DNA of 64,000 nt from Pseudomonas aeruginosa PAO1 (GTDB taxonomy: Bacteria; Pseudomonadota; Gammaproteobacteria; Pseudomonadales; Pseudomonadaceae). The notes beneath the pieces were generated by a model. That model did no database searches. It had not been told where the DNA came from and worked only from the letters and a program-made list of their open reading frames with translations. Positions 39,312 through 61,384 of the stretch are shown here, piece after piece. Location: NCBI RefSeq assembly GCF_000006765.1, contig NC_002516.2; one strand, given 5' to 3'. Both the position numbers and the translations under genes were made by a program. Within the stretch, counting starts at the first letter, position 1. Every line of letters starts with the position of its first letter.

Positions 39312-41195
39312 ATGGCCCTCGGGGCAATATGCTGTGGCCACGACACACGCTGTGAGCGACTATCGATGCCAGGGACTGCACTGTTCGAAAAGCCACGCTG
39401 GTTGCGCGACCTCCTGCGCTTCCTGCCCCTCAAGAGCCAATTCGTCCTCTCCGGGAACATCCGCGACCTGCAAGCCTGCGAAGTGGTGCCGGGTACGGTC
39501 ACCGCGCAGAGCTTCAACCAGACCCTCTGCGACGCCCTGCTGGACGCCGGCTACGCCCAGGTGCTGGCCTGGGATCCGCTGGCCGGGTTCCGCGTGCTCG
39601 GCCGGCCGGGCAGCGAGGCGGGGGCCACTCCGCAGGTGCTTCTCGACCTCGGCCTGACCCCGGTGGACGGCGCCGCGCCGGCCGGCATCGACCTACTCGG
39701 CGCGACCCTGCAACGCCTGGTCAACCGTAGCGGCGAGCCGATCGCCCTGATCGTCGACTTCGCCTCGCGCCTGGCGGTGCGCAACGACGCCCTGAGCGCC
39801 GCCGAGCACCAGTTGTTCACCCAGGCCCTGGTGCTCTCCCACCAGGCCCGCAGCCGTCCCGCCGGGGAACAGCGCAAACCGTTCTTCAACAGCGTGCTGT
39901 GGGTGGTGGAAAAGGAAGGCGACCTGCCCGACTGGCTGCTGGTGGACAACCCGCGCCTGCGCCATATCCCGGTGTCGAAGCCCGACCAGCCGGCGCGCCG
40001 GGCCCTGGCCCCGGCGCTGCTCCGCGGGCTAGGCGGCGCGGGCGTCGCCGAGGAGGCCCTGCAACAGGCCGCCGCAACCTTCGTCGAGAACACCGAAGGC
40101 CTGCTACTCCTCGATCTCAACGCCATCGTCCAGTTGGCGCGCGTGGAAGGCCTGGCCATGGAACGCATCGCCGACGCCGTGCGCCGCTACAAGGTCGGCG
40201 TCACCGAAGACCCCTGGCTGAAGATCGACCGCCAGCGCATCCGCCAGGCCGACGAGATCGTCCGCCGCCGGGTCAAGGGCCAGCAGCACGCGGTGACCCA
40301 CATGCTGGACATCGTCAAGCGCGCGATGACCGGGGTCGGCGCCAGCCGCAAGGGCAACCGCCCGCGCGGCGTGGCCTTCCTCGCCGGGCCCACCGGGGTC
40401 GGCAAGACCGAGCTGGCGAAGACCGTCACCAGCCTGCTGTTCGGCGACGAGAGCGCCTACATCCGCTTCGACATGTCCGAGTTCAGCGCCGAGCATGCCG
40501 ACCAGCGCCTGATCGGCGCGCCGCCCGGCTACGTCGGCTACGACGTCGGCGGCGAACTGACCAACGCGATCCGCGAAAAACCCTTCAGCGTGGTGCTCTT
40601 CGACGAGATCGAGAAAGCCCACCCCCGGATCCTCGACAAGTTCCTGCAGATCCTCGACGACGGCGTGCTCACCTCCGGGCGCGGCGATCGCGTGTACTTC
40701 TCCGAGGCGCTGATCGTGTTCACCTCGAACCTGGGCATCTACCGCCAGGGGGAAAACGGCGAACGAGTCGCCAACGTGCTCCCCGGCGAGCCCTTCGAGG
40801 CGGTGCAGGGCAAGGTCCACGGCGAGATCGAGCGCTACTTCAAGCTGGTTCTCAACCGCCCGGAAATCCTCAACCGGATCGGCGAGAACATTATCGTCTT
40901 CGACTTCATCCGCGCCGACGTCGCCGAGCAGATCTTCACCCAGATGGTCAACGGCACCTTCGCCGACCTCCGCGAGCAGCGCCTCGTCATCGAACTGGCC
41001 GAGGCGCCGCGCCAGGCGCTGCACGACCTCTGCCTGGGCGACCTGTCCAACGGCGGCCGCGGCATCCGCAACCAGCTCGAAGCGCGCCTGCTCAACCCGT
41101 TGTCGCGGGCACTGTTCGACCAGGACGCGCAGCCGGGCGAGCGCTTCCTGATCAGCGCCCTGGACGCCGACGGCCTGACCCTGGAACGCCGCTGA
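39312..41195 (+). CDS. ClpA/B-type AAA+ ATPase (intact D2 module, degenerate N-terminal module); alternative start 39366
   Basis: GPTGVGKTELAK, FDMSE, LIGAPPGYVGY pore loop, VLFDEIEKAHP, LQILDDG, FTSNLG. Confidence 0.9.
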   Translation: MALGAICCGHDTRCERLSMPGTALFEKPRWLRDLLRFLPLKSQFVLSGNIRDLQACEVVPGTVTAQSFNQTLCDALLDAGYAQVLAWDPLAGFRVLGRPGSEAGATPQVLLDLGLTPVDGAAPAGIDLLGATLQRLVNRSGEPIALIVDFASRLAVRNDALSAAEHQLFTQALVLSHQARSRPAGEQRKPFFNSVLWVVEKEGDLPDWLLVDNPRLRHIPVSKPDQPARRALAPALLRGLGGAGVAEEALQQAAATFVENTEGLLLLDLNAIVQLARVEGLAMERIADAVRRYKVGVTEDPWLKIDRQRIRQADEIVRRRVKGQQHAVTHMLDIVKRAMTGVGASRKGNRPRGVAFLAGPTGVGKTELAKTVTSLLFGDESAYIRFDMSEFSAEHADQRLIGAPPGYVGYDVGGELTNAIREKPFSVVLFDEIEKAHPRILDKFLQILDDGVLTSGRGDRVYFSEALIVFTSNLGIYRQGENGERVANVLPGEPFEAVQGKVHGEIERYFKLVLNRPEILNRIGENIIVFDFIRADVAEQIFTQMVNGTFADLREQRLVIELAEAPRQALHDLCLGDLSNGGRGIRNQLEARLLNPLSRALFDQDAQPGERFLISALDADGLTLERR

Positions 41196-41196
41196 G

Positions 41197-41835
41197 ATGG
41201 AACTGAGCCTGTCGCGGGTGCATTTCCCGGTGACCACCCTGGGCCCGGGACGGCGCCTGGGCATCTGGTTCCAGGGCTGTAGCATCCGCTGCCCCGGCTG
41301 CATCTCCGCCGATACCTGGGGGCCGGGCAGGCGGCGTATCGCCCTGGCACGCCTGCTCGCCGACATCCAGCCATGGCTGGAGCAGGCCGAGGGCATCACC
41401 GTCTCCGGCGGTGAACCCTTCGAGCAGTTCGCTGCCCTCCTCGCCCTGCTCGGCGAACTGCGCCGGCGCAGCCGCGCCGACATCCTGGTCTACAGCGGCT
41501 ACCCGCTGGAGCATCTGCACGCGCAACTGGAACAGGCCGCCGGGCTGATCGACGCGCTGATCAGCGACCCCTACCAACAGCACGCCGAACAGAGCCTGGC
41601 CCTGCGCGGCAGCGACAACCAGCGCCTGAGCCTGCTCACCGAACTCGGCCGCGCGCGCCTCGGCGGCTACCAGCGGCCACTGCGCGAAGACGACAAGGCC
41701 CTCGACCTGATGTTCGACCATGACGGCAGCGTGTGGATGGCCGGCATCCCGCGCCGCGACGACCTGCTGCGGCTACAGGACCTGCTGCGCGAACAGGGCC
41801 ACCAACTTAGCGTCAGCGCCCATCGGCCGCGCTGA
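41197..41835 (+). CDS. Radical SAM protein, NrdG/PflA activase-like
   Basis: WFQGCSIRCPGC (CxxxCxxC), VSGGEPF, GSDNQR; starts 1 nt after the AAA+ stop. Confidence 0.9.
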   Translation: MELSLSRVHFPVTTLGPGRRLGIWFQGCSIRCPGCISADTWGPGRRRIALARLLADIQPWLEQAEGITVSGGEPFEQFAALLALLGELRRRSRADILVYSGYPLEHLHAQLEQAAGLIDALISDPYQQHAEQSLALRGSDNQRLSLLTELGRARLGGYQRPLREDDKALDLMFDHDGSVWMAGIPRRDDLLRLQDLLREQGHQLSVSAHRPR

Positions 41836-41849
41836 ATGGATCGATACCG

Positions 41850-44800
41850 ATGATACGTTTCTGCCCCAACTGCCAGAGCGAACGCTCGCTTTCGGAAATC
41901 TTCTGCGAAGGCTCGATCCAGGGCCAGCCCTGCGGCTGGGACCTTTCCGCCGAAGCCATCCATCCCGCCGGCTGGCGACCACAGCCGGTGCTGACCCAGG
42001 AAGCCATCGCGCCGCCCGCCAGCGAGCCGCCAGCGGCGTCCGCCCCGCTCTGCGCCAACGGCCACCCGCTGCAACCCGGCGACCTGATGTGCCTGGAGTG
42101 CGGCGCCGCGCCGGCCGAAGGCCCGCTGCCGATGCAGGCCGAGGCCACGCCGCAGCCCGCCGTCACGGAAACCCTGATCGACGGCTGGCGTCTGCTGCGG
42201 CAGATCGCCAGCAGCGACGGCGTGCGCGAGCGCTACCTGGCCGAACATGCGGAAAGCGCCCGCCAGGCGGTGCTCACCCTGTATCGCCCGGGCGCCGAGC
42301 CGGACCCGGCGATCTACGACGTGATCCGCCGCCTGCCGCGCGAACACGTACCGGAAATCCTCGCCACCGGCCGCTGGGACGAGCGCGCCTACGAAGTGGT
42401 CGAGGAACTCACCGGCGGCAGCCTCGCCGAGCTCGGCACCGTGCTGGAGGACCGCGAGGCGGTGCGCCACGTGGTCCGCGAGCTGGGCCACGCCCTGCAC
42501 GTGTTCAACGAAGCCGGCCTGCGCCACCGCGACCTGCGCCCGGCCAGCCTGCTGGTGCGCAGCCACGAGCCACTGGACCTGGTGATCAGCGGCTTCGGCT
42601 CGGCGCGCCTGTCGGAGTTCGACCTGGATATCGTCTCGCCGCTGGAGACCAGCCGCTACATGGCCCCCGAGGCGATCGCCGGCGGCGTGGCGGCGGCTTC
42701 CGACTGGTGGAGCCTGGGCATGATCCTGCTGGAGCAGTTGACCCGCGGCGCCTGCTTCGAAGGAGTCAACGCCAACGCCTTCCTGATCCACGTGCTGGCC
42801 AACGGCGTGGCGCTGCCCGACGACCTCGACCCGCAGTTGCACCTGCTGCTGCGCGGCCTGCTTGCACGCGACCGCCACCAGCGCTGGCAGTGGCCGCAGG
42901 TACAGGCCTGGCTGAACGGCGAGGCGGTGGACGCGCCGGCCTCGGCGGACAGCGAAAAGGACGACGCCGAAGGCGCCAGCATCGCCCTCGGCGCACGGCG
43001 CTTCCGCAAGCCGACGGTCTTCGCCCTGGCCGCGGCCCAGGCCGAGCACTGGGCGGAGGCCCTCGACCACCTGCTGCGCGGGGCGATCGTCACCTGGGCC
43101 GAGCACATCGGCCTGTCGCCCAGGCTGCTCGCCGGCCTGCGCCAGGTGGCCCAGCACGAGGGGCTGGAGGACGACTTCCGGCTGATGCTGGCGCTCAAGC
43201 TGCTGAACCCGGAAATCCCGCTGATCCAGCGCGGCGAGATCGTCACCCCCGGCTGGCTGCTGGAGCATCCGCTGGAAGGCTACCGGCTGATCAGCGGCTC
43301 GGTGCCCGACCTGCTCGAACAGTTGCACACCGAAAGCTGGCTGTCGCGGCTCAAGACCCGCGCCGAGAACGTCCGCCAGCGCGCCCTGCACCAGCACATC
43401 GAACTCGCCGAAGAACAGTTGCGCATCTACCTGCTGTCGACCTCGCGGGCGCGCCTCGCCGCGCAGTGGCAGGAGCGCCAGCGCCTCCTGCCGGACACCG
43501 AGCACCCCGGCCTGCTGGCCCTGGCCGAGCGCCGGGTGATCGCCGAGGAAGACCTGATCGTCCTGCTCAGCGCCAACATCGGCCAGTTCCGTGCCGCCGA
43601 GACGATCGTCGAGGAAGCCGCCGGCCTGGCCCGCGACGCCGATGTGCACCTGTTCGACGCGGAGACCGCGCGCGGCCTGTTGCAGCACTCGCGGCAGGAG
43701 TTGTACCGCCGCGTCGACGAACGCATCAGCGGCTTCGCCCACAGCGGCGTGCCCAGGGTCGACGAATGGGCCGAGCAGTTCCGCCTGGAGCGGCGCATGC
43801 CGTTGGCGAGGGTCCTGGTGCTGCTGGCGATCCCGCCGGAACAGTGGCTGGAACCGCAGAAGCAGCAGTACGTGTCGCAGATCCTCGATTTCTTCGAGAA
43901 GAAAGTGGTCGCCGCGGTGATGCGCGGGCCGCTGGTGCGCATGAGCATCGGCAAGAGCACCCCACGCATCGACCTCAACGAACTGGATAGCGCGCGACGC
44001 CCCGCCGCCGCCCTGCTCGACCACCTGCTGCAACGCAACGCCCGCGCGGTGAGCCTCGACCCGGACAGCTTCCTCGCCAACCCGCAACTGGAAGTGCGGC
44101 TCAACGCGCTGTCCCGGCAAAGCTCGCTGTACAAGCGCGACACCGGCATCGACGGGCTCTACCTGGGCTTCCCCTTCCTGCTCAACCGCGACCCGCGCGG
44201 CACCACCCGCACGCGCATCGTGCCGCTGCTGCTGTGGCCGCTGAAGCTGCAACTGGAAGTCGGCAGCCGCGGCCAGGTGGCGCTGGCCTTCGACGGCGAG
44301 CGCGAGGAAGTACGCCTCAACCCGGCCCTGGAAAGCCTGCTCGGCCCCGAGCCGTGCAAGCGCTGGCGCAAGGTCGCCGACGAACTGCTCGGCCGCTCCG
44401 CGCTGCGCGCCGCCGACGTGATGGATGCCTTCGGCCTGCTCGCCACCCCGCGCGGGCGGGTGCTGGAAGGATTGCCGCCGAGTTCCACCGAGGTCACGCC
44501 CTACCAGGACCAACTGGCCTGCGCCGCGGTGCTGTTCCACGTCACCTTCATGGGCCAGGCGATCGGCGAGGACCTGCGCCAGTTGAAGAGCCTGCCGCCC
44601 TCCGGCACCGGCCTGGAGACCGCGCTGCGCCTGCGCGAGAACGGCGAGCCGGAAGCCCGCGAGAGCCCGCCGGAGTTGCAGCGCTACTTCACCGTGGCCA
44701 GCGACCCGTCCCAGGAGGCCGCCGTGTTGCAGGCCCGGCAGAGCCCGGGGCTGCTGGTGGAAGGCCCGCCCGGTACCGGCAAGAGCCAGACCATCGTCAA

Positions 44801-45482
44801 CATGGTCGCCGACGCCATCGGCCGCCAGCGCAGCCTGCTGATCGTCTGCCAGAAGCACGCCGCCCTGGAAGTGGTACACAAGCGCCTGGTGGCCGAGGGC
44901 CTGGGCCAGCGCATCGTCATGCTCAACGACGTCAACCGCGACCGCGAACCGGTGATCCGCAACATCCGCGAGCAGCTCGAAGCGCTGTTCGCCGACGCCG
45001 GCGGCGCCCAGGGCTGGGAGCGCCAGCGCGAGCGCCTGGCGGCGCGTATCGAGGCGCTGGAAGGCGAACTGGACCGCTACCACCAGAGCCTGCACCGCGT
45101 GGACGAGGCCACCGGGCTGAGCTACCGGCGCCTGCTCGGCGAACTGATCGAGCTGGAGAAAGGCTCGCCGCCGCTGGACTTCCCGGCCCTGCGCCACGCC
45201 TGGCGGCGCTGGACATCGGCAGCCTGGCGCGCCTGGAGGAAAACTGCGCGCCGCTGGTCCGCCTCTGGCTACCGGCCCGCTACGAAGGCAGCCCGCTGGC
45301 GCAACTGCGCGCCTTCGCCACCGACCAGGCCACCCTGCAAGCCTTCGCCGACAGCCTGCGCGCCTTCGGCGAAGCGGAGAACGCCCGGCAGAAAGCCCTC
45401 GACGAACACCCGGCGAGCTTCGAGGTCGACGACCCGACGCCCTACCGCGCCTGGCTGGCAAGCCAGGTCGGTACCCTGCTGA
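41850..45482 (+). CDS. N-terminal fragment of a Zn-ribbon / kinase-like / DUF4011-like / SF1 helicase protein (true frame lost at about 45196)
   Basis: CxxC ribbons; HRDLRPAS, GFG, YMAPE, SDWWSLG; Walker A GPPGTGKSQT. Confidence 0.85.
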   Translation: MIRFCPNCQSERSLSEIFCEGSIQGQPCGWDLSAEAIHPAGWRPQPVLTQEAIAPPASEPPAASAPLCANGHPLQPGDLMCLECGAAPAEGPLPMQAEATPQPAVTETLIDGWRLLRQIASSDGVRERYLAEHAESARQAVLTLYRPGAEPDPAIYDVIRRLPREHVPEILATGRWDERAYEVVEELTGGSLAELGTVLEDREAVRHVVRELGHALHVFNEAGLRHRDLRPASLLVRSHEPLDLVISGFGSARLSEFDLDIVSPLETSRYMAPEAIAGGVAAASDWWSLGMILLEQLTRGACFEGVNANAFLIHVLANGVALPDDLDPQLHLLLRGLLARDRHQRWQWPQVQAWLNGEAVDAPASADSEKDDAEGASIALGARRFRKPTVFALAAAQAEHWAEALDHLLRGAIVTWAEHIGLSPRLLAGLRQVAQHEGLEDDFRLMLALKLLNPEIPLIQRGEIVTPGWLLEHPLEGYRLISGSVPDLLEQLHTESWLSRLKTRAENVRQRALHQHIELAEEQLRIYLLSTSRARLAAQWQERQRLLPDTEHPGLLALAERRVIAEEDLIVLLSANIGQFRAAETIVEEAAGLARDADVHLFDAETARGLLQHSRQELYRRVDERISGFAHSGVPRVDEWAEQFRLERRMPLARVLVLLAIPPEQWLEPQKQQYVSQILDFFEKKVVAAVMRGPLVRMSIGKSTPRIDLNELDSARRPAAALLDHLLQRNARAVSLDPDSFLANPQLEVRLNALSRQSSLYKRDTGIDGLYLGFPFLLNRDPRGTTRTRIVPLLLWPLKLQLEVGSRGQVALAFDGEREEVRLNPALESLLGPEPCKRWRKVADELLGRSALRAADVMDAFGLLATPRGRVLEGLPPSSTEVTPYQDQLACAAVLFHVTFMGQAIGEDLRQLKSLPPSGTGLETALRLRENGEPEARESPPELQRYFTVASDPSQEAAVLQARQSPGLLVEGPPGTGKSQTIVNMVADAIGRQRSLLIVCQKHAALEVVHKRLVAEGLGQRIVMLNDVNRDREPVIRNIREQLEALFADAGGAQGWERQRERLAARIEALEGELDRYHQSLHRVDEATGLSYRRLLGELIELEKGSPPLDFPALRHAWRRWTSAAWRAWRKTARRWSASGYRPATKAARWRNCAPSPPTRPPCKPSPTACAPSAKRRTPGRKPSTNTRRASRSTTRRPTAPGWQARSVPC

Positions 45483-45484
45483 AT

Positions 45485-48145
45485 TTGCGCGAGGAGCAGC
45501 GCCAGCGCCTGGCCCACTGGCTGCCGCTGTTCCGTGACGCCGCACCAGGACAGCCGAGCCGTGGCGACGGCCTGTTGGCGGAGGCCGAGCAGATCGAACG
45601 GCAACTGCGCCAGCTCGACCTCGAACGGCATGCGCCGCTGCTGTCGCCGGCCCTCGCCATGCTCGAAGAGAACAACCTCGAACGCTTCCAGGCCCACACC
45701 CGCCAGGTGCTCGAGGCACGCACCTGGCTGGCCCGGCTCAACCCGCTGCACCTGCTGCGGCGCGGCCGCCTGCGGCGCTTCCTGCGCGAGCACGGCGAGG
45801 CCGACGACGACAGCCGCCTGGCCGCCCTCCTCGGCGCCTGCGACCTGGAGCGCCAGTGGCGGCCGCTGCGCCGGCAACTGGCGGCGCTGCAACAGAGCCT
45901 GGGGCTGGCGACAGTCGCCACCGATGCCGGTCCGGAACTGACCGGCCTGGCCGGCCACGCCAGCCAGCAACTGCGCGAGATCCAGACCCTGGCTCGTGGC
46001 CTGGCCCAAGCGCCGCGCGCCGAGCAGCTCGACGCGGTGATCCTCACCGGCGAGAAACAGCGCTTCGAAGCGCTGCTCGGCGACCTCGACGCCGCGCTGA
46101 TCCGCCAGGCCGCACGCCAGCTCAGCCTGGACAAACTGAAGGTGCTCGCCGACTGGCTCGGCGACGAACTGCTGGAACAGCTGCACCGCGCCATCGCCGG
46201 CAACCAGAGCAACCTGCCGGCCCTCGGCCGCCTGCGCGAGGCGCTACCGCAACTGGTCGCCTACCAGCGCTTCCGTGGCCGCGCCGGCCAGCTCGAAGCC
46301 ACCGACCTGGAATTCCTGGCCCTGCTGCGCCAGCGCCAGGAACGACTCGACGCGATTCCCGTCGAAGAACTCGAAGCCACGGTGCGCCGCATGCTCAACC
46401 GCGAAGCGCGGCTGGGCTGGAAGCAGCGCCTGGAACAAGACAATCCGGAACTGCTGTTCAGCCAGGACGAAGCCAGGGCCAGGGTCGCCAGCCTCGCCGA
46501 AGCCGATGTGCAGATGCGCGCGCTGAACCGCGAACTGCTCGGCAAGGGCATCGACGCCGCGCGCCTGGGCAGCCGCAAGCAATGGGAAGACGTCACCCGC
46601 CTGACCGGCAAGCGCTCGCGGCGCCTGCGCGAGTTCATCGAGCTGGGCGCCGAACTCGGCCTGATGAGCCTGCGCCCGGTCTGGCTGATGAACCCCGACC
46701 TGGCCAGCCGCGTGCTGCCGCTCAAGGCCGGGCTGTTCGACATGGTGATCTACGACGAAGCCTCGCAGATGCCGGTGGAGTTCGCCCTGCCGACCCTCTA
46801 TCGCGGGCGGGTCACGGTGGTCAGCGGCGACGAGAAGCAGATGCCGCCGACCGCGTTCTTCTCCAGCCGCGTGGAAAGCGACGAGGCCGAACTGTTCGAC
46901 GGCGAAGCGCCCGACGAGGACGCCGACGAGGAGCAGCGCGAAGCCTACGAGGACACCTGGAACCGCCGCGAGATCAAGGACTGCCCGGACCTCCTGCAAC
47001 TGGCGCGCAACGCCCTGCCCAGCACCACCCTGCAGATCCACTACCGCTCGGCCTACCGCGAGCTGATCGGCTTTTCCAACGCCTCGTTCTACGGCAACCG
47101 CCTGAGCGTGCCGGTACGCCATCCGCAGGCCAACATACTGCGCATCAAGCCGCTGGAACTGATCCAGGTGAACGGCCTGTACCAGAACCAGAGCAACGAG
47201 CGCGAGGCCGAGCGAGTCGTCGACTACCTCGCCGAACTCTGGCGCCAACCCTACGCGGCGCGGCCGTCGGTGGGCGTGGTCACCTTCAACCGCAAGCAAG
47301 CCGACCTCATCGAGGAGCGCCTGGAACTGCGCGCCGAGCAGGACGAGACGTTCCGCGCCGCCTACAGCGAGGAGCGCGAGCGCAGCGAAGACGGCGAGGA
47401 CATGGGCGTGTTCGTGAAGAACGTGGAGAACGTGCAGGGCGACGAGCGCGACGTGATCGTCTTCTCCTCCACCTTCGGCCGCAACGGCCAGGGCAGCTTC
47501 CGGCGCAACTTCGGCGTGCTCGGGCAGACCGGCGGCGAGCGCCGCCTCAACGTGGCGGTGACCCGCGCGCGGCGCAAGGTGGTGATGATCACCTCGATGC
47601 CGATCGGCGACATCTCCGACATGCTCGGCACCCAGCGCTCGCCGAGCAGCCCGCGCGACTACCTGCAAGGCTACCTGGAATACGCCCGCGCACTGTCCGC
47701 CGGCGAATTCGCCGGCACCGGCCAGCTGCTCGAGCGCCTGCAAACCGACCGCAGCGACCAGCGCCGCCAGCACTACCAGCGGCACGACGGCTTCAGCGAG
47801 ATCGTCGGCGAGTATATCCGCTCGCTGGGCTGGTCCGCCGCGCCCGCCGGCGAAGGCGACGCCTTCGGCCTCGACTTCGCCATCGAGAACCCGGCCACCG
47901 GCCTCTACGCCATCGGCATCGAATGCGACGCCCCCTGCCACCCGCTGCTGGAACGCGCCCGCGCCCGGGAAATCTGGCGACCCTCGGTGCTGCGACGGGC
48001 GATCCCGCACCTCCACCGGGTTTCCTCCCAGGGCTGGTACCACGACGGCGACAACGAACGCGCACGGCTGCGCGCCGCCATCGAGAAGGCCCTGGCGCCC
48101 AGCGCGGAAACCCATCCCACGGCAGCAGCGGAGGCCTCCCAATGA
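45485..48145 (+). CDS. C-terminal fragment: SF1 (Upf1/DNA2-like) helicase core plus very-short-patch-type nuclease domain; coding frame actually begins at about 45197
   Basis: DEASQM, GDEKQMPP, HYRS, VQGDERD, RRLNVAVTRAR; C-terminal LDFAI...IGIECD...RVSSQGWY. Confidence 0.85.
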   Translation: MREEQRQRLAHWLPLFRDAAPGQPSRGDGLLAEAEQIERQLRQLDLERHAPLLSPALAMLEENNLERFQAHTRQVLEARTWLARLNPLHLLRRGRLRRFLREHGEADDDSRLAALLGACDLERQWRPLRRQLAALQQSLGLATVATDAGPELTGLAGHASQQLREIQTLARGLAQAPRAEQLDAVILTGEKQRFEALLGDLDAALIRQAARQLSLDKLKVLADWLGDELLEQLHRAIAGNQSNLPALGRLREALPQLVAYQRFRGRAGQLEATDLEFLALLRQRQERLDAIPVEELEATVRRMLNREARLGWKQRLEQDNPELLFSQDEARARVASLAEADVQMRALNRELLGKGIDAARLGSRKQWEDVTRLTGKRSRRLREFIELGAELGLMSLRPVWLMNPDLASRVLPLKAGLFDMVIYDEASQMPVEFALPTLYRGRVTVVSGDEKQMPPTAFFSSRVESDEAELFDGEAPDEDADEEQREAYEDTWNRREIKDCPDLLQLARNALPSTTLQIHYRSAYRELIGFSNASFYGNRLSVPVRHPQANILRIKPLELIQVNGLYQNQSNEREAERVVDYLAELWRQPYAARPSVGVVTFNRKQADLIEERLELRAEQDETFRAAYSEERERSEDGEDMGVFVKNVENVQGDERDVIVFSSTFGRNGQGSFRRNFGVLGQTGGERRLNVAVTRARRKVVMITSMPIGDISDMLGTQRSPSSPRDYLQGYLEYARALSAGEFAGTGQLLERLQTDRSDQRRQHYQRHDGFSEIVGEYIRSLGWSAAPAGEGDAFGLDFAIENPATGLYAIGIECDAPCHPLLERARAREIWRPSVLRRAIPHLHRVSSQGWYHDGDNERARLRAAIEKALAPSAETHPTAAAEASQ

Positions 48146-49491
48146 GCGGACCGAAAGTCGTACGAATCGTCACCCGGGAAGAAGCCATCGCCACCTGCGA
48201 GCGCGACCTGCAACGCCTGGACAAGGCCCTCGCGCGCTGGGAAAACCAGGCCAGCCGGCTCGCCCAGCTCAGCGACGCCGAGCGCGCCGCCGCCCACGCC
48301 CGCCGCGCCAGCCTGCACGCCCTGCTCGAACAGGAACGCTGGCTGGACGTGCAACTACAGGTGAAGATCGAAAGCGAATTCCTCAAGCGCGACCTCGCCG
48401 AACGCGAAGAGCGCGCCATCCGCCAGGCCGCGGAAACGCGCCAGCAACACCGCCGCCTCCAGGAAAACGCCAGCGCCCTGCTCCAGGCCCTCGACGCCAG
48501 GCCCGATGCCGCCAGCGCGGCACTCCGGCAAACCCTGCATACGCTGGCCGACGGCGCCCTCCGCGACGACGCGGAAGCCCTGCTCGCCCAAGGCCTCGCC
48601 GCCCTCGCCAGCGCCCCCGCCGAAGAACGCCTCAGCGAAGCCCAGCGCGAACTCGCCCAGCGCCTGAAGACCGGCGAAACGCCCATGTCCCTGGAACAGT
48701 GGCGCGCCCGCCAGCAACAGGACGCCCCGCACGAACAGCGCCTGGCGCGCATCGACCGGCACATCGCCGAACTGCAACTGCTGCAAGGCGAGGCCAGCGC
48801 CCAAGCGTTCCTCGAGCGACTGGCACGCGCCGAAGCCGAACAGCGCCCGGAGCGCCGCAACCTGCTGCTCGACAGCCTGGTCCTCGACCTCGCCCAGGCC
48901 GCCCGCGAACACCAGCAGCAACGCCAGCGCCTGGAACACCTGCAAGACCTCGCCAGCGAAGTCGCCGCCCTGGGCGCCGCCGAACACGCCGAACTGCTCC
49001 AGCGCGCCGCCGCCTGCCAGCCCGACAGCGATCCGCAGCAACTCGCCGAACTCACCGAGCGATGCAACGCCATCCTCACCGCCCACCTCCAGCAACAGGC
49101 CGCCCTCGCCCGCCGCCAGGCCGTGCTCCAGGGCCTCGCCAGCCTCGGCTACGAAGTCCGCGAAGGCATGGCCACCGCCTGGGCGCAGACCGGCAGGGTC
49201 GTCCTGCGCAAACCCGCCACCCCCGGCTACGGCCTGGAAGTCGGCGGCAAGGCCGACAACGGCCGCCTGCAACTGCGCGCCGTCGCCCTCAACGCCAACC
49301 GCGACAGCCAGCGCGACCGCGACATCGAAACCCTCTGGTGCGGCGAATTCCAACGCCTCCAGGCCCTGCTCGCCGCCCAGGGCGGCGAACTCAGCGTGGA
49401 ACGCGCGCTGGGAGTGGGAGAAGTGGCGTTGAAGGAGATTGGCGAGGAGGAGCAGCGGGAGATGGGGGTGGCGCGGCAGAGGGGGTTGTGA
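48142..49491 (+). CDS. Coiled-coil hypothetical protein, 449 aa
   Basis: ATG overlaps the helicase stop (ATGA); long Ala/Gln/Glu/Arg heptad region and a compact C-terminal domain. Confidence 0.8.
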   Translation: MSGPKVVRIVTREEAIATCERDLQRLDKALARWENQASRLAQLSDAERAAAHARRASLHALLEQERWLDVQLQVKIESEFLKRDLAEREERAIRQAAETRQQHRRLQENASALLQALDARPDAASAALRQTLHTLADGALRDDAEALLAQGLAALASAPAEERLSEAQRELAQRLKTGETPMSLEQWRARQQQDAPHEQRLARIDRHIAELQLLQGEASAQAFLERLARAEAEQRPERRNLLLDSLVLDLAQAAREHQQQRQRLEHLQDLASEVAALGAAEHAELLQRAAACQPDSDPQQLAELTERCNAILTAHLQQQAALARRQAVLQGLASLGYEVREGMATAWAQTGRVVLRKPATPGYGLEVGGKADNGRLQLRAVALNANRDSQRDRDIETLWCGEFQRLQALLAAQGGELSVERALGVGEVALKEIGEEEQREMGVARQRGL

Positions 49492-49680: not shown

Positions 49681-49768
49681 TTATGGCCGGGTGGCGCGCA
49701 GCCATACAAGACCCTTCGGGGGAAAACTGCGGGCCGTCCTAGAGCGGTGTTCAAGCGCCCGGCCGCCT
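49681..49768 (+). ncRNA. C4-like antisense RNA (phage P1 c4 / P4 CI type)
   Basis: Closing stem TGGCCGGGTGGCGC...GCGCCCGGCCG, internal hairpin CCCTTCGGGG, and CCTAGAG/GTGTTCA segments complementary to upstream and downstream CTCTAGG/TGAAC(AC) repeats. Confidence 0.7.
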
Positions 49769-49812
49769 CTCTGAACAGGAGGCGAAACTGAACGATCTCT
49801 AGGAAAAAACTC

Positions 49813-50037
49813 ATGACCATCAAGAAAGCTTCTCTTTCGAAGTCTCGGCATTTAAAAGTCGGTTATCAGCTTTATGAAAGCCGTCATAGCGACTGGGAAC
49901 GTCGTGGCAAACCACGGCAAATTCCCTACCTGCGGTTGAGTGGCGATTGGCTGGAGGCTGCGGGCTTTGAGGTTGGCTGCAAGGTGAGCATTCAGGTCAC
50001 CAGGCGGCGCCTTGTCATGCAAGTGGTTGAGGATTGA
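49813..50037 (+). CDS. symE: SymE-family type I toxin, 74 aa
   Basis: LKVGY...PYLRLSGDWLEAAGFEVG...IQV matches the SymE AbrB-like signature; AGGA RBS. Confidence 0.85.
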   Translation: MTIKKASLSKSRHLKVGYQLYESRHSDWERRGKPRQIPYLRLSGDWLEAAGFEVGCKVSIQVTRRRLVMQVVED

Positions 50038-50042
50038 GGCCA

Positions 50043-50081
50043 AGCGCCCCTCGGGCAGAGGGTATCTGCTCAGGGGGCGCT
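50043..50081. terminator. GC-rich hairpin after symE
   Basis: AGCGCCCC...GGGGCGCT outer stem with an inner GGCAGA/TCTGCT stem; no long U tract. Confidence 0.4.
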
Positions 50082-50659
50082 GGTTTCGCTATGAACCTTC
50101 ATCCCATTCTTGCCGCATCTCGCCCTGCGCACGCACGCTAGGCATCGATGCGAGCCAGCAAATGTACTTGCTTTTATCAGCAGACTTGAGCACGGCATCT
50201 TGCAATAACAGCTATCGATCTAGACAAGCATTCTTTTGCATCTAAATATAGTCATTTGTCATTCCCTACCCTCCTTATGGAGTTTGAGAAGAAGGATAAA
50301 TCTACTTAAATTCTTCAAACTCTTTAGATAGCTAAAACTGATAGCGTTATTCCGAATTCGCTCTGCTTGCCTCAGGCCGCCCTTAAACTCCCATGCGCCT
50401 TAGGGAAAAGGGCGCCGCTCAAATAACTGGAAAACCGAACACCAACCACCATATAATTTCATCATAGAATATTGAGCTGCAAGCTAAAGAATCAATGATA
50501 GATTCAACATGAGGCGCTACTGAGTTATCCAGCACAACAGAAAGCTTTTTCACCCATGTTTAACCAATATCTCTCTGCTGCTTTTATTTTTGGTGAGAGG
50601 TATAGTTATTTGGCTCTCATATATTTTGTGCGAGTTTGCTGTGCGGCGGTAGTCGTTGC

Positions 50660-51613
50660 TTACTGGATTGAGTATTCCTCAGGTACGTCCCAATCCTTAA
50701 AGCGCGCCTCGCCAGTCTGGTAAAACTGTTTGACCTGTTTAACGTAATTTAGGAAATCTCGATTCTCTGTGGCCAACCGGTTTGCCATATCCCAGTCAAT
50801 TGCGTCACGCTCACGCGCGGGAATCAGCACTTGACTGTCAGCGGGGTTATCTACATCTAGTCTGATGAAGCCAATACCATGCGCAGCAAAGAGCATTCGT
50901 AACTCTTTCAGTGTTTCCTGCCCACTGACTTCCGCCGCAACCAAGTAGCCAAAATTACTCCACGACGAATTCGATACCGCTTGGAAAAAGCATTCGCGTA
51001 TATTCGAGCGATTGATCAGCAACTTGACTTCAAAAGACCAAAGTTTGGTGCGCTTATCGGAATACTGCTTCACACAGTCACGTACCTCCCGGTGCCAATC
51101 TGCACCCAAGTCCTGCATGCCGACCATGTCCGGGTATAGCCATCGATTTCCATTCGGCCCGCGTTTGTTCGATGAGCGCTTCTCGTTGATGCGTTTGGAA
51201 AAGACGCCGAACTCTTCCCAGAGGTACTGAGAGAGCAGTGGGTACAATGCGTGTTCGTCAAGCATCGAAGTACCAATATCTGCTGCTGCCGTAGCGCCCT
51301 CACCCTCGGCGGCGGCCACTTCGGCACTGTCCGATTTTTCCGAGTAGTAATACTTGCGCGGGCGCCCTTCGGTGGTTTTCAACGCTGGATGCTTCATTTG
51401 CATACGGGGTCGCTGCGAGCTGATTTCCGCGACAAGCTGCTGCACCAAATCCGCATCCGACTTGATGTAGTCGCCTCGACTATTGGCCCGTTTTTCTTGG
51501 CACTCCGCGGGGTAAGTAGCGAACACCCACTCGGCGATCTGCCTGGCAGTGAATTTTTCCTCGGGCCGTACCTGCAAATAGCCCACTACCGCTTTTGAGA
51601 GATTCAGCGCCAC
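50660..51613 (-). CDS. HrgA/COG2958-like protein: N-terminal winged HTH plus PD-(D/E)xK nuclease-like domain
   Basis: YPDMVG...WSFEVK, FFQAVSNSSWSNFGYLV. Confidence 0.75.
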   Translation of the reverse strand: MALNLSKAVVGYLQVRPEEKFTARQIAEWVFATYPAECQEKRANSRGDYIKSDADLVQQLVAEISSQRPRMQMKHPALKTTEGRPRKYYYSEKSDSAEVAAAEGEGATAAADIGTSMLDEHALYPLLSQYLWEEFGVFSKRINEKRSSNKRGPNGNRWLYPDMVGMQDLGADWHREVRDCVKQYSDKRTKLWSFEVKLLINRSNIRECFFQAVSNSSWSNFGYLVAAEVSGQETLKELRMLFAAHGIGFIRLDVDNPADSQVLIPARERDAIDWDMANRLATENRDFLNYVKQVKQFYQTGEARFKDWDVPEEYSIQ

Positions 51614-51643
51614 GTTATTTCTCCATTCTTTCCTGCCACGATA

Positions 51644-52231
51644 TCACCGGTGAAGATTCACATTGACATGCACGACATGGATCAGCTCTGCGCTCACATG
51701 CCTGTGATCGCTGACATAAGCCCATTTCATCGGGTGATCGAATGTCGCTCCATGTTGATACGCGGGAAGATCGGCATCTGCCTTTTTACGCAGTCTGAGC
51801 ACTAGTTCAGCAATGCCAGGCTTCTTGAAGTACTCGACGACATAGCCACGGCCTTGCCGCCCAGTGGAGTAGCGGGAAACCAACTGTTCGATCGCCTGCG
51901 CGTGATACGTGGGTCCTGCATAGATCTTCGCCTCAGCCAGCCGCTGCTCTGGAAACATCATGCTCTCAGCCCTGATCGTTAGATCGACCCGCCCATTGCT
52001 GTATCCCTCACGCGTCACAGCAAGGCCCGGCATCCTCAAAGCTGCCGCTAGGAACGCGGATAGCTTTTCTTCGCTGTCAGCAGTTAAGTGATGGGCTTCC
52101 GCTTCCATGCGCTGAACACAATCCTCGAAATGACGGTCAAGAAAATCGTCGAACTCCTCCGCCGTTCTGGCTTGGAATAATTTTCGCAGCACTGGAAACC
52201 AGCCCAACAGTGTTTTCAGACTATCGCCCAT
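51644..52231 (-). CDS. Hypothetical protein with a restriction-endonuclease-like E..D..EAK motif (ATG 52231)
   Basis: SEEKLS, GRVDLTI, LAEAKIY; start overlaps the hsdR stop. Confidence 0.7.
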   Translation of the reverse strand: MGDSLKTLLGWFPVLRKLFQARTAEEFDDFLDRHFEDCVQRMEAEAHHLTADSEEKLSAFLAAALRMPGLAVTREGYSNGRVDLTIRAESMMFPEQRLAEAKIYAGPTYHAQAIEQLVSRYSTGRQGRGYVVEYFKKPGIAELVLRLRKKADADLPAYQHGATFDHPMKWAYVSDHRHVSAELIHVVHVNVNLHR

Positions 52232-55200
52232 GCGCAATCCTCTGTGCATCTTGAAGCGCCCAACGAATCGACAGGCATTCGGCCCAGTCGTCGCCCTCCG
52301 GATCTTTCTGCGCCAATAAGCGCACTTCGTCGAAACTCATCGTCTGTGGAGTATCCGTGCTGCCTACACGGACAAACTCTCGATTCAGGATTCCGACATC
52401 GTGGGCCGATAACAGATTCAGAACGGGAAACAGAACATGGCTTACCGACAACCCGCTGGTTTCTTCGATGAGGGCGAGATCGGCAATACCCAGACTGTTC
52501 CTTCCTCCCGCTGCCAATCTATCCAGTAGCATATCCACGGCTTGTGACCAGACCACCGCAGCATCGAATCTGTCTCGAACAATGTCCAACGCACGCATAC
52601 GGACATCCTCTACCCCATGGGCAGGGTTCTGCTGGTACGTCACATCGAACACCATGTCCGTCAGCCAGCGTTTGAAATTCGGGTTGTCGCTGAACTGCTT
52701 GAACAATTCTGTGTGGTCGGACAGCAGCTCCAGCACAACCCGGTTGAGTGCCTTGTCGTGCTCCAACTTGGCGTTCTGGCGGTCGGAGTTGACCTGCGCG
52801 TTCTGATACGCTTTGTCCTGCGCCACGCGCACCGGAATTTCCTCGGCGATGACCTTGCCGATTTTGTCGGCATCCTTCCAGTCGATGTTGCCGAAAAGAT
52901 CGTTGAAGGTTTTGAGGATGTTCGACAGCTTGTCGATATCCGGCTCGCCCTTGCCGCCACCGCCACCGACCGGAGCCACTTCGACTGTGGCGTCGGTATC
53001 GTCCATCGCCATCTTGAGTGCAGCCCGTGCTTCAACACGGTAACTGTCGATGTCGATGGATTCGAGTACACCCTTCGACAGATCCTCTTCCTTCGGCGCG
53101 GGCAGCTTCGGGATCAGGAAATTCAGGAAGATCGACAACTTCTCCCATGCCGGATGGCCGTAGCTCAGGATCGCGGCGAGGAAGCCGTAGCTGCGTACAA
53201 AGGCTTTGGCCTTGCCCTTGAACTCGACCTGGTTGTCCTCGTCCAGATTGGCTTGGTATTGCTCGACGCAGTGATCGAGGATGGGATCGAGTTTGTCGCG
53301 GTCGGCACCACTGAGATACAGCGCCACCAAGTCCTCTACCTGCGGCCAGCTGTAGATCTGCTTGTCATCCAGATCGGCTTTCAGGTCATGCAGCTTGTTG
53401 GCATCGGTTTCACCGGTCTGGATCGTAGCGCGGTAGTAGTCCTGGAACGCCTTCTTCACAGCTTCGGCGTTGTCGGCGAAGTCCAGCACGAAGGTGTCAT
53501 GCTTTTGCGGGTGCGCTCGGTTCAGGCGCGATAGCGTCTGCACCGCCTGTACGCCCGCCAGCTTCTTGTCCACATACATCGTATGCAGCAGCGGCTCATC
53601 GAAGCCGGTGACGAATTTGTTGGCGACGATCAGAAAGCGATACGGGTCTTGCCTGAGCCTGTCCGGAATCTCCTTGCTCGGGAAATCGTTGAGGTCGGCC
53701 TCGGTCTTCTTTTCGCCGCCAATCTCGAACTCGCCCGAGTACGCGACGATGGCTTTGTACGGGCTCTTGATCTGTTCGAGATAATCCGACACCTCGCGCC
53801 AGTAGTCGATGGCCCGTGCAATGCCATTGCAGACGATCATTGCCCGCGCCTTGCCACCGATCTTCTTGGCGCCCATCACCTGTGCGACGAAGTGATCAAC
53901 CATGATCTCCGCCTTGCGCCGGATGGCCTTGTCGTGGGATTCGACGTAGTGGCGGATCTTTTTCAAGGCCCTGGCCTTGTCGAAGTCCGGATCGTTCTCC
54001 ACCGTCTTGGCGACCTGGTAGAAACTGTCCAGCGTGGTGTAGTGGGCAATCACGTCGAGGATGAAACCCTCCTGTATCGCCTGTTTGGTGGTGTAGGTCA
54101 GTTCCTCTGGCGAGCGGAATTCCACCTTGTCGTCCACCACGGTCTTCTCGCCGAACAGTTCCAGTGTCCTGTTCTTGGGCGTGGCGGTGAAGGCGAAGTA
54201 GCTGGCGTTGGACAGCATCCGACGCGACTGAATGCGCTTCTCGATCTCGGTGTTCACCGCGTCCTGCGTCGCGTCTTCCTCGAAAGCCTCCTCGTCGGTC
54301 TTGCCGGAAAGGGCTTCATGCATCCTGGCCGTGGTCTTGCCGCCCTGGCTGGAGTGCGCCTCGTCGATCAATAGCGCGAACGTCCTGCCCGACAGGTCGC
54401 CGATTTCTTCGAGGATGAAGGGAAACTTCTGCACCGTGGTCACGATGATCTTCCGGCCCCGGCGCAGGTAGTCGCGCAGTTCCTGCGCGTTGTCGGAATG
54501 GCCGAAAATCGAAGCCACATGGTCGTAGCCCTTGATGGTGCGCGCGATCTGCGTATCCAGCGCACGCCGGTCGGTGATGACGATGATGGAATCGAACTGC
54601 GGCATCAAAGGGTCGGCTACGCTGCGCAACTCCACCAACTGGTGCGCCAGCCAAGCAATGGTGTTGCTCTTGCCGCTACCTGCCGAGTGCTGGATCAGGT
54701 AACGCTTGCCCACACCGTCGCTGCGAGTGCGGCGCAGCAGGGCGCGCACGGTGCGCAACTGGTGGAAGCGGGGAAACACCGGCTTGCGCTTTTTCTTCTT
54801 CCGCCCTGTGGTGGCGTCGGTTTCCTGCTCCTCCACCACCTGCGCGAAGCTTTCGATGATGTTGGCCAGCGATTCCTTGGCCAGCACCTGCTTCCACAGG
54901 TAATCGGTCTTCAAGCCGTTGGGGTTGGGCGGGTTGCCCGCACCGTTGTTCCAGCCCTGGTTGAATGGCAGGAACCACGACGCCTTGCCCTTCAGCTCCG
55001 TGCAGAAATACACCTCGGCATCGTCTACCGCGAAGTGCGCGATGCAGCGCCCCGGCTGGAACAGCAGCTCCTGCGGGCTGCGTGTGCTCTGGTACTGGAC
55101 GATGGCATCGGCCACGGTCTGCTTGGTCAGCGAGTTCTTCAACTCGAAGGTCAGCACCGGCAGGCCGTTGACGAAGATCACCAGGTCGAGTTCGTTGCCG

Positions 55201-55661
55201 GAGTCGTGACTGTAGCGTACCTGCCGGGTGATGCTGAAGATGTTCCGGCCAAAGGCCTCGGCGGCGTTGGTGTTGCCCGGCGTGGGCAGCAGCCTGTAGA
55301 GATCGACCCTCACCGGCCCATGGCTTACGCCCTTGCGCAGCACATCCACCACACCGCGCTTGGTGATCTCGCCTTGCAGGCGATGCAGGAACTGTGTGCG
55401 CTTGATGCCCTCGTGCGCCAACTCCAGCGTTTCCACCGCATCAGGCTGCGTGGCTTGCAGAAAGGCCAGCAGTTGCACGGTATCCAGCGCCACATCGCGG
55501 TTGAAATCCGTCGCTCGGCCCAGTACGTAGCCGCCCAGTGCATAGATGGCCCCCGGACTCTGTACGGCATTTGGAGGAACGGAAGCATGCTCGCTGATAC
55601 CCGCCAGGTGGCGCACGATCAATTGCTCCAGTGCCTTCTCGCTGGTATCGGTGGGTTTCAT
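52221..55661 (-). CDS. hsdR: Type I restriction endonuclease subunit R, 1146 aa
   Basis: Nuclease DLVIFVNGLPVLTFELK, Walker A QHSAGSGKS, DEAH, FTATPK, TGFDEP. Confidence 0.95.
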   Translation of the reverse strand: MKPTDTSEKALEQLIVRHLAGISEHASVPPNAVQSPGAIYALGGYVLGRATDFNRDVALDTVQLLAFLQATQPDAVETLELAHEGIKRTQFLHRLQGEITKRGVVDVLRKGVSHGPVRVDLYRLLPTPGNTNAAEAFGRNIFSITRQVRYSHDSGNELDLVIFVNGLPVLTFELKNSLTKQTVADAIVQYQSTRSPQELLFQPGRCIAHFAVDDAEVYFCTELKGKASWFLPFNQGWNNGAGNPPNPNGLKTDYLWKQVLAKESLANIIESFAQVVEEQETDATTGRKKKKRKPVFPRFHQLRTVRALLRRTRSDGVGKRYLIQHSAGSGKSNTIAWLAHQLVELRSVADPLMPQFDSIIVITDRRALDTQIARTIKGYDHVASIFGHSDNAQELRDYLRRGRKIIVTTVQKFPFILEEIGDLSGRTFALLIDEAHSSQGGKTTARMHEALSGKTDEEAFEEDATQDAVNTEIEKRIQSRRMLSNASYFAFTATPKNRTLELFGEKTVVDDKVEFRSPEELTYTTKQAIQEGFILDVIAHYTTLDSFYQVAKTVENDPDFDKARALKKIRHYVESHDKAIRRKAEIMVDHFVAQVMGAKKIGGKARAMIVCNGIARAIDYWREVSDYLEQIKSPYKAIVAYSGEFEIGGEKKTEADLNDFPSKEIPDRLRQDPYRFLIVANKFVTGFDEPLLHTMYVDKKLAGVQAVQTLSRLNRAHPQKHDTFVLDFADNAEAVKKAFQDYYRATIQTGETDANKLHDLKADLDDKQIYSWPQVEDLVALYLSGADRDKLDPILDHCVEQYQANLDEDNQVEFKGKAKAFVRSYGFLAAILSYGHPAWEKLSIFLNFLIPKLPAPKEEDLSKGVLESIDIDSYRVEARAALKMAMDDTDATVEVAPVGGGGGKGEPDIDKLSNILKTFNDLFGNIDWKDADKIGKVIAEEIPVRVAQDKAYQNAQVNSDRQNAKLEHDKALNRVVLELLSDHTELFKQFSDNPNFKRWLTDMVFDVTYQQNPAHGVEDVRMRALDIVRDRFDAAVVWSQAVDMLLDRLAAGGRNSLGIADLALIEETSGLSVSHVLFPVLNLLSAHDVGILNREFVRVGSTDTPQTMSFDEVRLLAQKDPEGDDWAECLSIRWALQDAQRIAHGR

Positions 55662-56732
55662 GCGTCGTCTCCCTTCTTCTTGCCCGGCTTATTGTCGAGT
55701 TGGTGCGGCGGTTCGATCTGCTTGAGCAGACGATCGAAATCGCTTTCGAACAGCCTGTCCTGCACGATGCGGTATTTCTCGAATTCGCTTTCGGCGTGCG
55801 CCCTGGCGATTTCGGCGGTGACTCGGCCCGCGTCCTGCAGCACCTCGCGGTCAGTCGCTTCGATGAAGCGGTTCAGGCGCGTTTCCCAATCCTGCATGGT
55901 CATGGGGATCTTGCGCAGCGCCATGCTTTCAGCCACATCCAGATACGCGTTCACCAGCCGGGAAAGTTGCGCCATTTCGTCTTCGGTCAAATAGTTCTTG
56001 GCGACCGCCACATCGAACTTCTGGATTTTTCCTAATGACGCATCCGTCCACGTGGTCAGTCCCATATGCTGCTTGTTGGCGTCGGCGCGGGTATGGACGA
56101 CTTCTGCTGCCGTCTGCCCGTGGATGGCCCTGTGCAGCTTGTTCTGCACCGTGGCGAAGAAGCGTTTGGTGGCTTGCGCCGTCACGTCGTAGTCGATGGA
56201 CGTGGCGTAGATGTCGGTGATCTTCTGGTAGAACTTGCTCGGACAGGCGAATCTCGCGAACGCGCTGGAGCTGCTCCTCGAAGTAGCGTTCCGTCAGGAC
56301 GGAGCCACCGCTTTTCAGGCGCTGATCGTCCATCGTGTAGCCCTTGACGGCGAACTCCTCAACGATGGTCGTCGCCCACTTGCGGAACTGCAGGGCGCGT
56401 TCGGAATTCACCTTGTAGCCCACGGCGATGATGGCCGCGAGGTTGTAGTGCTGGGTGTCGTAGCTTTTGCCGTCGGAAGCAGTTATCCGAAATTTTCGGA
56501 TAACTGCTTCCGCCTGCAACTCGCTGTCGGAAAACACTTTCTTCAGGTGGTAGTTGACGGTGCGCACATCCACGTCGTAGAGCTGAGCCATCATTTTTTG
56601 CGTCAGCCAGACGTTTTCGTCGGCGTACACGGCCTCCACGCCGCCCTGCCCGGTGGCCGCAATGAACGTCAGGTATTCCGCCGCTGAGGAGCGCACCAGC
56701 GCGGTTTGCGTCGTTGTATCGGCCTTTTTCAT
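55658..56732 (-). pseudogene. RhuM-family protein with an apparent 2-bp deletion near 56237
   Basis: VWLTQKMMAQLY, HYNLAAIIAVGYKVNS, FRKWAT in frame 55929..56732; the continuation KFYQKITDIYATSIDYD...FFATVQNKLH is in frame 55658..56185. Confidence 0.85.
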
Positions 56733-56756
56733 GGGCGATCCAGTGGGCAGGCCAGA

Positions 56757-60508: not shown

Positions 60509-60625
60509 TATCAGCGCTTCAACTCTTCATTCAAATATGTTTAGTGGCAAGCCACAGTTGACGTGTGCGGGCCGTGGCCATGGGATGCCTTGATAGGGAA
60601 AATACGCTCCGGCCATTCGTGCCCA

Positions 60626-60979
60626 TTAATCCAGCACAACCAGAAACTCAGTCGCCAGCGCGGTCGGCTGAACATCTCGAACATTGCGCTGCAGCGAAAC
60701 TAGGCCGTAATCCGCCATCATCCGCAGGGTGCGCGACAGGTTCGGCACCTTGCGGCCGCTGAGTTCAGCCAGTTCGGTCAGGGACTTAGGTTGTTTGTCA
60801 TGGATCAGGCGAAGCAGGCGGCGATTGTCGTCCGACAGCACTGCGGCCAGTGATGCCAGAGACGGAAACCAAATGCTGGGCGTTTCGCTCCGCTGCGGTG
60901 GCGAACCTTCTGGCTGTCGGATACCCACAATGCAGCGCTTCATGATGGCTAATCCAATGACACGTTGATTTACAATCAT
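60626..60979 (-). CDS. Predicted HTH transcriptional regulator (HVO_A0114/MarR-like; start may be ATG 60943)
   Basis: IWFPSLASLAAVLSDDNRRLL...SLTELAELSGRKVPNLSRTL. Confidence 0.75.
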   Translation of the reverse strand: MIVNQRVIGLAIMKRCIVGIRQPEGSPPQRSETPSIWFPSLASLAAVLSDDNRRLLRLIHDKQPKSLTELAELSGRKVPNLSRTLRMMADYGLVSLQRNVRDVQPTALATEFLVVLD

Positions 60980-61261
60980 ATCAGTGCCTGATAATCATCG
61001 TCGATCACAAGTACTTTCACAAAAGGAAAGGCAAGGGAATGGAATCGAGATCAACGCCCTTTATTCAAAAAGGAAAGGCAGTCTCTCCCCGGTTGAGCTC
61101 ACACCACCAAATTGGCCAGTGGAACCGGACCACGCCTACATCATCTCCAGCACCCGCTCGGCGCACTCGGAGCGACCCGGAGCCTACTAACTAGGCAGCG
61201 ACACCAAAGTTGGTACAGTACATAAATTGGGCAAGACTCAGTAGCACCAATCGACAGACAT

Positions 61262-61298
61262 AAAAAAACCCAACCACCGTAAAGTGGCTGGGTTTTTT
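61262..61298 (-). terminator. Intrinsic terminator downstream of tRNA-Pro (bidirectional form)
   Basis: A7-CCCAACCAC...GTGGCTGGG-T6 hairpin. Confidence 0.85.
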
Positions 61299-61306
61299 AG
61301 GTTTTT

Positions 61307-61384
<78 letters not shown>

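Follow-up and report, generated by a model that had tools for sequence, protein, structure and literature searches.

A one-base deletion divides a conserved helicase and predicted nuclease gene in Pseudomonas aeruginosa PAO1

We analysed a stretch of 64,000 nucleotides from Pseudomonas aeruginosa PAO1 (RefSeq assembly GCF_000006765.1, contig NC_002516.2; about 3,038,001–3,102,000 of AE004091.2), hereafter the window, in which a large helicase-nuclease gene on the forward strand (41850–48145), the third of a four-gene cassette, is split. Two forward-strand open reading frames (ORFs) cover the gene, which we take to be the annotated PA2727 and PA2728, in line with the locus tags of the publications cited below. 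PA2727 (41850–45482) encodes 1210 residues, and PA2728, placed by gene callers from a TTG start at 45485, encodes 886. The first frame reads normally to ...PPLDFPALRH and then runs through 95 atypical codons (HAWRRWTSAAW...) into a TGA stop at 45480–45482. The second frame is open from 44234, and the two overlap over 44234–45482; it encodes junk up to ...GPAP at 45196 and from 45197 continues as RLAALDIGSLARLEENC... until the stop at 48143–48145. Relative to intact alleles, one base is missing between 45196 and 45197 (3,083,196/3,083,197 of AE004091.2). The N-terminal native-frame part (41850–45196) supplies residues 1–1115 plus two bases of codon 1116, and the C-terminal native-frame part (45197–48145) supplies residues 1117–2098 plus the stop. 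The out-of-frame tail of the upstream product (45197–45482), rich in Arg, Trp, Ala and Pro, consists of 94 missense codons after the altered codon 1116, followed by the TGA. Positions 3,079,850–3,083,482 of AE004091.2 encode the exact 1210-residue product, and 11.6 kb of that record are identical to window positions 37850–49482.

The two pieces match intact 2098-residue proteins of P. aeruginosa at 98–99% identity, with a single codon straddling the break. Aligned to the intact protein P0136 (2098 residues), the upstream piece covers residues 1–1115 without gaps (1108/1116 identical), and the 982 downstream residues encoded from 45197 cover residues 1117–2098, again gapless (966/982 identical). 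At the DNA level, the intact allele L004 (AP040362) shows exactly one extra column between 45196 and 45197, and one other difference in the 160 nucleotides aligned. The halves furthermore match consecutive parts of the same profiles, namely positions 289–442 and 579–1351 of PADLOC PDC-S37 and positions 643–803 and 836–1719 of NCBIfam ProA, which places the split of one gene far beyond chance. The original prediction, that one base is missing and a gene of about 2098 residues is thereby split, is borne out by the alignment gap at 45196/45197 and by the length of the intact proteins, in which the junction peptide it had proposed is present as an exact sequence.

Intact copies are the rule in P. 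aeruginosa, and PAO1 has one base fewer. Searches with the downstream ORF retrieved 2098-residue P. aeruginosa proteins at 99% identity, representing clusters of 3452 and 2367 distinct sequences, together with relatives of ~2100 residues across Pseudomonas, Xanthomonadales, Burkholderiales and beyond. Among contigs from NCBI, JGI and Logan, the exact 1210- and 886-residue split products are encoded by 37 and 40 contigs, respectively (41 index blocks); the intact allele P0136 is found on 457 contigs (819 index blocks) and the intact P0122 on 190. In other species, an uninterrupted ORF of at least 2050 residues is present in 65 of about 70 complete orthologous loci, and the exceptions (L041, L056, L061, L074 and L075, mostly metagenome bins) are interrupted elsewhere, not at the PAO1 break. 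A single ORF of 2061–2149 residues was likewise observed in 26/26 diverse loci checked codon by codon. Orthologues mostly split at the same place, which the original prediction had named as the observation that would speak against it, were not encountered: none of the orthologous loci examined is split there.

Further lesions of independent origin affect the gene within the species. One P. aeruginosa allele carries an in-frame deletion of 154 residues and another is frameshifted at both ends (P0004, P0108), and a cystic-fibrosis isolate gained a 15-bp insertion in the same gene during infection (PMC4918941). PAO1 itself has four substitutions, A585T, R631H, A1284T and R1301H (region 43602, 43740, 45698 and 45749), that are rare among 20 intact P. 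aeruginosa alleles sampled, R631H being seen in one of them; each of them is a G-to-A change when read on the coding strand, but the number is too small for an interpretation.

The position of the break relative to the catalytic motifs is as originally described. Walker A (GPPGTGKS, 44763–44786) lies 5' of it; 3' of it come Walker B (DEASQ, 46754–46768), the subsequent helicase motifs and the nuclease. The break itself is located in the long helical insert, ~650 residues in length, that separates the two Walker motifs. A helicase with Walker A, Walker B and motifs III–VI on one polypeptide is not encoded in PAO1, where Walker A belongs to the 1210-residue product and the rest, from 46754 onward, is in the other frame. 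The PAO1 product thus keeps Walker A and loses Walker B, helicase motifs III–VI and the nuclease, and the remaining 982 native codons are left without a proper start. PAO1 cannot make the intact 2098-residue protein. We propose, with a probability of roughly 0.93, that the loss of one base became fixed in the lineage of PAO1 and made a pseudogene, now annotated as two ORFs, of a gene that is core in P. aeruginosa.

Genomes completed around 2000 often contained erroneous single-base indels where the GC content is high, and on this prior alone the missing base could be attributed to the sequencing or assembly of this record, an option that the original prediction had left standing next to a real mutation. 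However, the same gap is present in two Logan de novo assemblies from independent sequencing runs (SRR13861592 and SRR13861391), which were not reference-guided and match the window with 100% identity along 8,982 and 8,712 bases, and therefore represent PAO1-lineage samples. The contigs that encode the exact 1210- and 886-residue products likewise argue against an error, and comparisons based on resequencing still list the position as a difference from PAO1. In particular, Table 2 of Bezuidt et al. 2013 reports, with PAO1 as the reference, one inserted base at 3,083,197 (45197 of the window) in PA2727, common to clone CHA, PA14, 2192, C3719, PACS2, 39016 and the taxonomic outlier PA7 (PMC3697988). 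As the insertion is shared by these other strains, PA7 included, parsimony identifies the PAO1 state as derived. In work on clone ST406, 'PA2727 + PA2728' is entered as a single gene (PMC4918941). The indel itself is consequently already published, being known from the variant table. The two de novo assemblies and the 37–40 contigs settle the matter: the deletion is genuine and confined to the PAO1 lineage, and an error in this record is very improbable. Even less credit can be given to the idea that programmed −1 ribosomal frameshifting or transcriptional slippage yields full-length protein in PAO1. A −1 shift anywhere within the overlap of the frames would in principle join them, but the sole X XXY YYZ heptamer in this overlap is CCCGGGG at 44744, which precedes Walker A and lies 450 nucleotides 5' of the break; it does not offer a solution since a shift at this point would scramble Walker A. 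No slippery heptamer was found within 450 nucleotides of the break, and no homopolymer run of at least five bases in 45001–45400. Moreover, the orthologues read the protein from a single uninterrupted frame, so that no recoding signal is under selection, in agreement with the original prediction, which had considered programmed frameshifting unlikely.

The split gene might alternatively work as two polypeptides, with PA2727 contributing the zinc ribbon, the kinase fold, DUF4011 and Walker A, and PA2728, produced via termination-reinitiation, contributing Walker B and the nuclease, followed by non-covalent reassembly. The break lies outside the catalytic motifs, in the ~650-residue insert, and reinitiation is conceivable as the TTG at 45485 is two bases past the TGA stop. 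Against this, native residues 1117–1212 are lost from both products, and many columns in this stretch are invariant across 10 diverse orthologues, including L1118, E1130, W1140–A1143, D1195, P1198, R1200 and W1202. In addition, no recognisable ribosome-binding site precedes the TTG, and none of about 65 complete orthologous loci has a two-gene layout at this place. We therefore regard functional halves as improbable, if somewhat less so than an error in the record. Certain observations nevertheless weigh against a pseudogene. The rest of both ORFs is free of further stops, all motifs are intact, and the rate of non-synonymous relative to synonymous change is not significantly raised: the PAO1 branch has 10 non-synonymous and 19 synonymous codons vs 11 and 41 on the intact-strain branch (Fisher p = 0.20), and with relaxed selection on the PAO1 branch not significant, the comparison speaks neither for nor against a recent inactivation. 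Hence, the lesion may be of recent date or the pieces still of some use, and the fragments may have residual activity. Finally, the assemblies that confirm the gap are all of the PAO1 lineage; they exclude an error in a single record and are not proof for every PAO1 subline.

Restored to one frame, the large protein combines several modules, all on the forward strand. Two CxxC pairs reminiscent of a zinc ribbon (41862–41873 and 42090–42101) are followed by a kinase-like domain (Pfam Pkinase PF00069, 42330–42902, residues 161–351), DUF4011 (Pfam, 44073–44342) and an Upf1-like superfamily 1 (SF1) helicase, which starts with AAA_11 (Pfam, 44703–44960) and continues with motif III (46823–46849) and AAA_12 (Pfam, 47009–47596). 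Walker A and Walker B are invariant in 44/44 orthologues. At the C-terminus, a Vsr-like restriction endonuclease (REase) domain, MTES_1575 (Pfam PF18741, 47792–48082, with D..ExD motifs at 47870–47932), scores 60.4 bits vs a gathering threshold of 38.2. D2009 and E2025 do not vary among the 44 orthologues and D2027 occurs in 43/44, and this conservation of acidic catalytic residues marks the domain as a predicted nuclease. The definition of MTES_1575 goes back to Anantharaman et al. 2013 (PMC3710099), who assigned this nuclease of giant HEPN-helicase proteins to the Vsr family and were the first to describe the architecture later known from Hhe. A 'HRVSSQGW' sequence near the C-terminus, considered as a glycyl-radical site, was rejected by inspection as it lies inside the REase domain match.

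For the kinase-like domain, the original prediction of a kinase holds for the fold and not for the catalytic residue set in Pseudomonas. The Pkinase match scores 70.1 bits vs a cut-off of 31.7, and the domain aligns to the structures of RSK, PknA and PknE. In P. aeruginosa, the positions of the beta3 Lys, HRD Asp, catalytic-loop Asn and DFG Asp (window 42525–42599) are occupied by T, D, S and G, respectively, the beta3 Lys position being placed from the multiple alignment only. Over the 44 orthologues, the pattern is mostly T/D/(S,T)/G, with Gly in place of the DFG Asp in 34/44. The canonical beta3 Lys, catalytic-loop Asn and DFG Asp are lost in Pseudomonas and in most proteobacterial orthologues, and judging from this loss, the domain is probably a pseudokinase in Pseudomonas. 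The full K/D/N/D set is confined to a pair of Verrucomicrobiota loci, L064 and L069, which suggests that an active kinase has degenerated to a pseudokinase within the family. Two Bacteroidota orthologues (L049 and L070) retain the N and the D of the set.

The other three genes of the cassette are likewise on the forward strand. The first (39312–41195, 627 residues as annotated) encodes a Clp/Hsp100-like AAA+ protein with two rings, a degenerate N-terminal one and a D2 ring that carries both Walker A (GPTGVGKT) and Walker B (LFDEIEKA); it is modelled as a ClpC/ClpB-like double-ring unfoldase whose first ring is without recognisable Walker motifs. Orthologues align from about residue 13–27 onwards and another gene call on identical DNA gives 609 residues; the true start is probably 39366 (609 residues), the annotated one being too far upstream (39312–39365). 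The second gene (41197–41835, 212 residues) encodes an NrdG/PflA-like radical S-adenosylmethionine (SAM) protein of the activase type, with an intact CxxxCxxC cluster motif. It scores 74.7 bits vs a cut-off of 126 for NrdG and 51.9 vs 232 for PflA, and is therefore a related protein and not an equivalog of either; no glycyl-radical partner with a recognisable motif was identified. The fourth gene (48142–49491) encodes a 449-residue coiled-coil protein. There is a 4-nucleotide overlap between it and the large gene's stop, an arrangement that is usual in orthologous loci. Its AlphaFold2 model (predicted local distance difference test score, pLDDT, 86.3) consists of a long helical bundle and a small C-terminal alpha/beta domain, with no fold match in the PDB at E ≤ 0.001 and no Pfam or NCBIfam family. 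In the alignment of this protein the start is always MSGPKVV..., and the C-terminal ~100 residues are the most conserved, with G336, Y337, G364, E366, W399 and C400 invariant.

The order of the four genes is strictly kept across phyla. Among 78 distinct related loci, drawn from one-genome-per-species contigs, the AAA+ and radical-SAM genes precede the large gene in unchanged order in 76, and the gene for the 449-residue protein occurs in 72, the misses being contig ends. Such loci occur in Pseudomonadota, Bacteroidota, Acidobacteriota, Verrucomicrobiota and Chlamydiota, with 39–65% identity outside Pseudomonas. Among 105 flanking ORFs from 27 loci there was no recurrent Pfam family (at most 3 members), and PADLOC matches were single and scattered; as the flanking genes outside the four are heterogeneous, the cassette is self-contained. 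A plasmid search recovered close relatives only on rhizobial and Caballeronia megaplasmids or chromids. Matches on conjugative Klebsiella and Ralstonia plasmids were discarded as distant helicase relatives only.

The best-scoring named models for both halves of the large protein are ProA and PDC-S37. ProA (NCBIfam NF058533) gives 142.8 + 361.1 bits, in sum 504, vs an equivalog cut-off of 1500, and Hhe (NCBIfam NF042953) gives 90.4 + 232 bits, in sum 322, vs 2000. With summed scores so far below the equivalog cut-offs, the protein belongs to neither family. PDC-S37 is the best PADLOC match for both halves, ahead of Hhe and MkoA, with 132 and 352 bits that are co-linear over positions 289–1351 of 1550; this model is without a curated cut-off and is a purely computational candidate for single-gene defence. 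In the literature library searched, there was no paper on ProA or PDC-S37. Hhe is reportedly a single-gene anti-phage protein, as presented by Gao et al. in 2020. Like the intact form of the PAO1 gene, Hhe (PADLOC PDLC02194) unites DUF4011, an SF1 Upf1-like helicase and the Vsr-family MTES_1575 REase in a giant polypeptide. However, its N-terminus is a HEPN domain (plus transglutaminase and winged helix-turn-helix in MTES_1575), whereas the protein studied here, in which Pfam detects no HEPN domain, has CxxC pairs and a kinase fold; furthermore, Hhe acts as a single gene, and the large protein is part of a fixed four-gene cassette. MkoA of type I Mokosh similarly combines a kinase fold and an SF1 helicase in one protein, and PADLOC PDLC03920 matches both parts with 100 and 80 bits. 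In Mokosh, MkoA is accompanied by the separate phospholipase D (PLD) nuclease MkoB, while the nuclease here is the fused Vsr-like REase, and no PLD domain was detected by Pfam among the neighbouring genes, so the locus is not a type I Mokosh system. In the literature, PA2727 and PA2728 appear in variant tables only, and no functional study of the gene or the cassette was found.

Reasoning from its Hhe- and Mokosh-type analogues, the large protein could be the part of a conflict or defence-type system that tracks and cuts nucleic acids: it would load on nucleic acid, translocate, and use its Vsr-like nuclease for cleavage. Sensing or regulation might then fall to the degenerate kinase domain and to the CxxC pairs of zinc-ribbon type, and the unfoldase, the radical-SAM enzyme and the coiled-coil protein would act as accessory remodelling or activating factors. 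PAO1 would be a natural null for this system. The domain repertoire, the patchy cross-phylum distribution at high identity and the position beside a defence hotspot all speak for a defence role. In that hotspot, core defense hotspot 1 (cDHS1), Johnson et al. 2023 use a 'DUF4011' gene, PA14_RS11765, as the core marker of the right flank (PMC10250203). This gene, the orthologue of the split PAO1 gene, serves there as a landmark only, with its function unassigned and the PAO1 frameshift unmentioned. It is present in every P. aeruginosa isolate (PMC10250203), and this core status is a point against a defence role, as are the mostly ordinary genes that flank the cassette in other genera and the scores vs named anti-phage families, which are far under their cut-offs. 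On balance, a role in defence remains tentative, and we would sooner wager against it than for it. The remark in the original prediction that the mutation 'hides the system' in this strain presupposes such a candidate defence system, which is plausible. The more specific proposal, that the cassette is an undescribed, horizontally spread immune or genome-surveillance system of which the standard phage host PAO1 is a natural loss-of-function mutant, is a speculative one that we consider slightly more doubtful still. If true, it may help to explain why no phenotype has been tied to the cassette genes and why PAO1 is so phage-permissive.

PAO1 is the reference strain of P. aeruginosa genetics and a favourite phage indicator host. 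PA2727 and PA2728, handled as separate genes in mutant libraries, transcriptomics and orthologue tables, would in our reading be the halves of one pseudogene, and the function of the conserved core cassette should be sought in intact strains such as PA14. The lesion as such is ordinary and already tabulated; what is added here is the exclusion of error and recoding, the pseudokinase assignment and the conserved four-gene context.

Downstream of the cassette, a block of low GC content (0.50–0.61 vs about 0.68 in the flanks) extends over about 50000–62000. On the reverse strand it contains hsdR (52224–55661), a RhuM-family gene (55932–56732), hsdS (56760–58133) and hsdM (58133–60508), and is followed towards its end by tRNA-Pro(GGG) (61307–61383) and then pheT. 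This block with its type I restriction-modification genes is the small cDHS1 of PAO1, in agreement with the report that cDHS1 holds a type I restriction-modification system only in this strain (PMC10250203). In the intact strain L004, a SymE-toxin-family gene is found on the corresponding side of the cassette. ARAGORN also assigns an unusually long tRNA-Trp(CCA) of 98 nucleotides at 20257–20354 on the forward strand; the Rfam scan, run at the gathering threshold, returned no tRNA, not even the ordinary tRNA-Pro at 61307–61383, and is neutral for this assignment. The same scan places an sRNA-Xcc1 (RF02221) at 49685–49772 on the forward strand, with 82.6 bits vs a gathering threshold of 53, just 3' of the gene for the 449-residue protein and where the low-GC hotspot has its edge.

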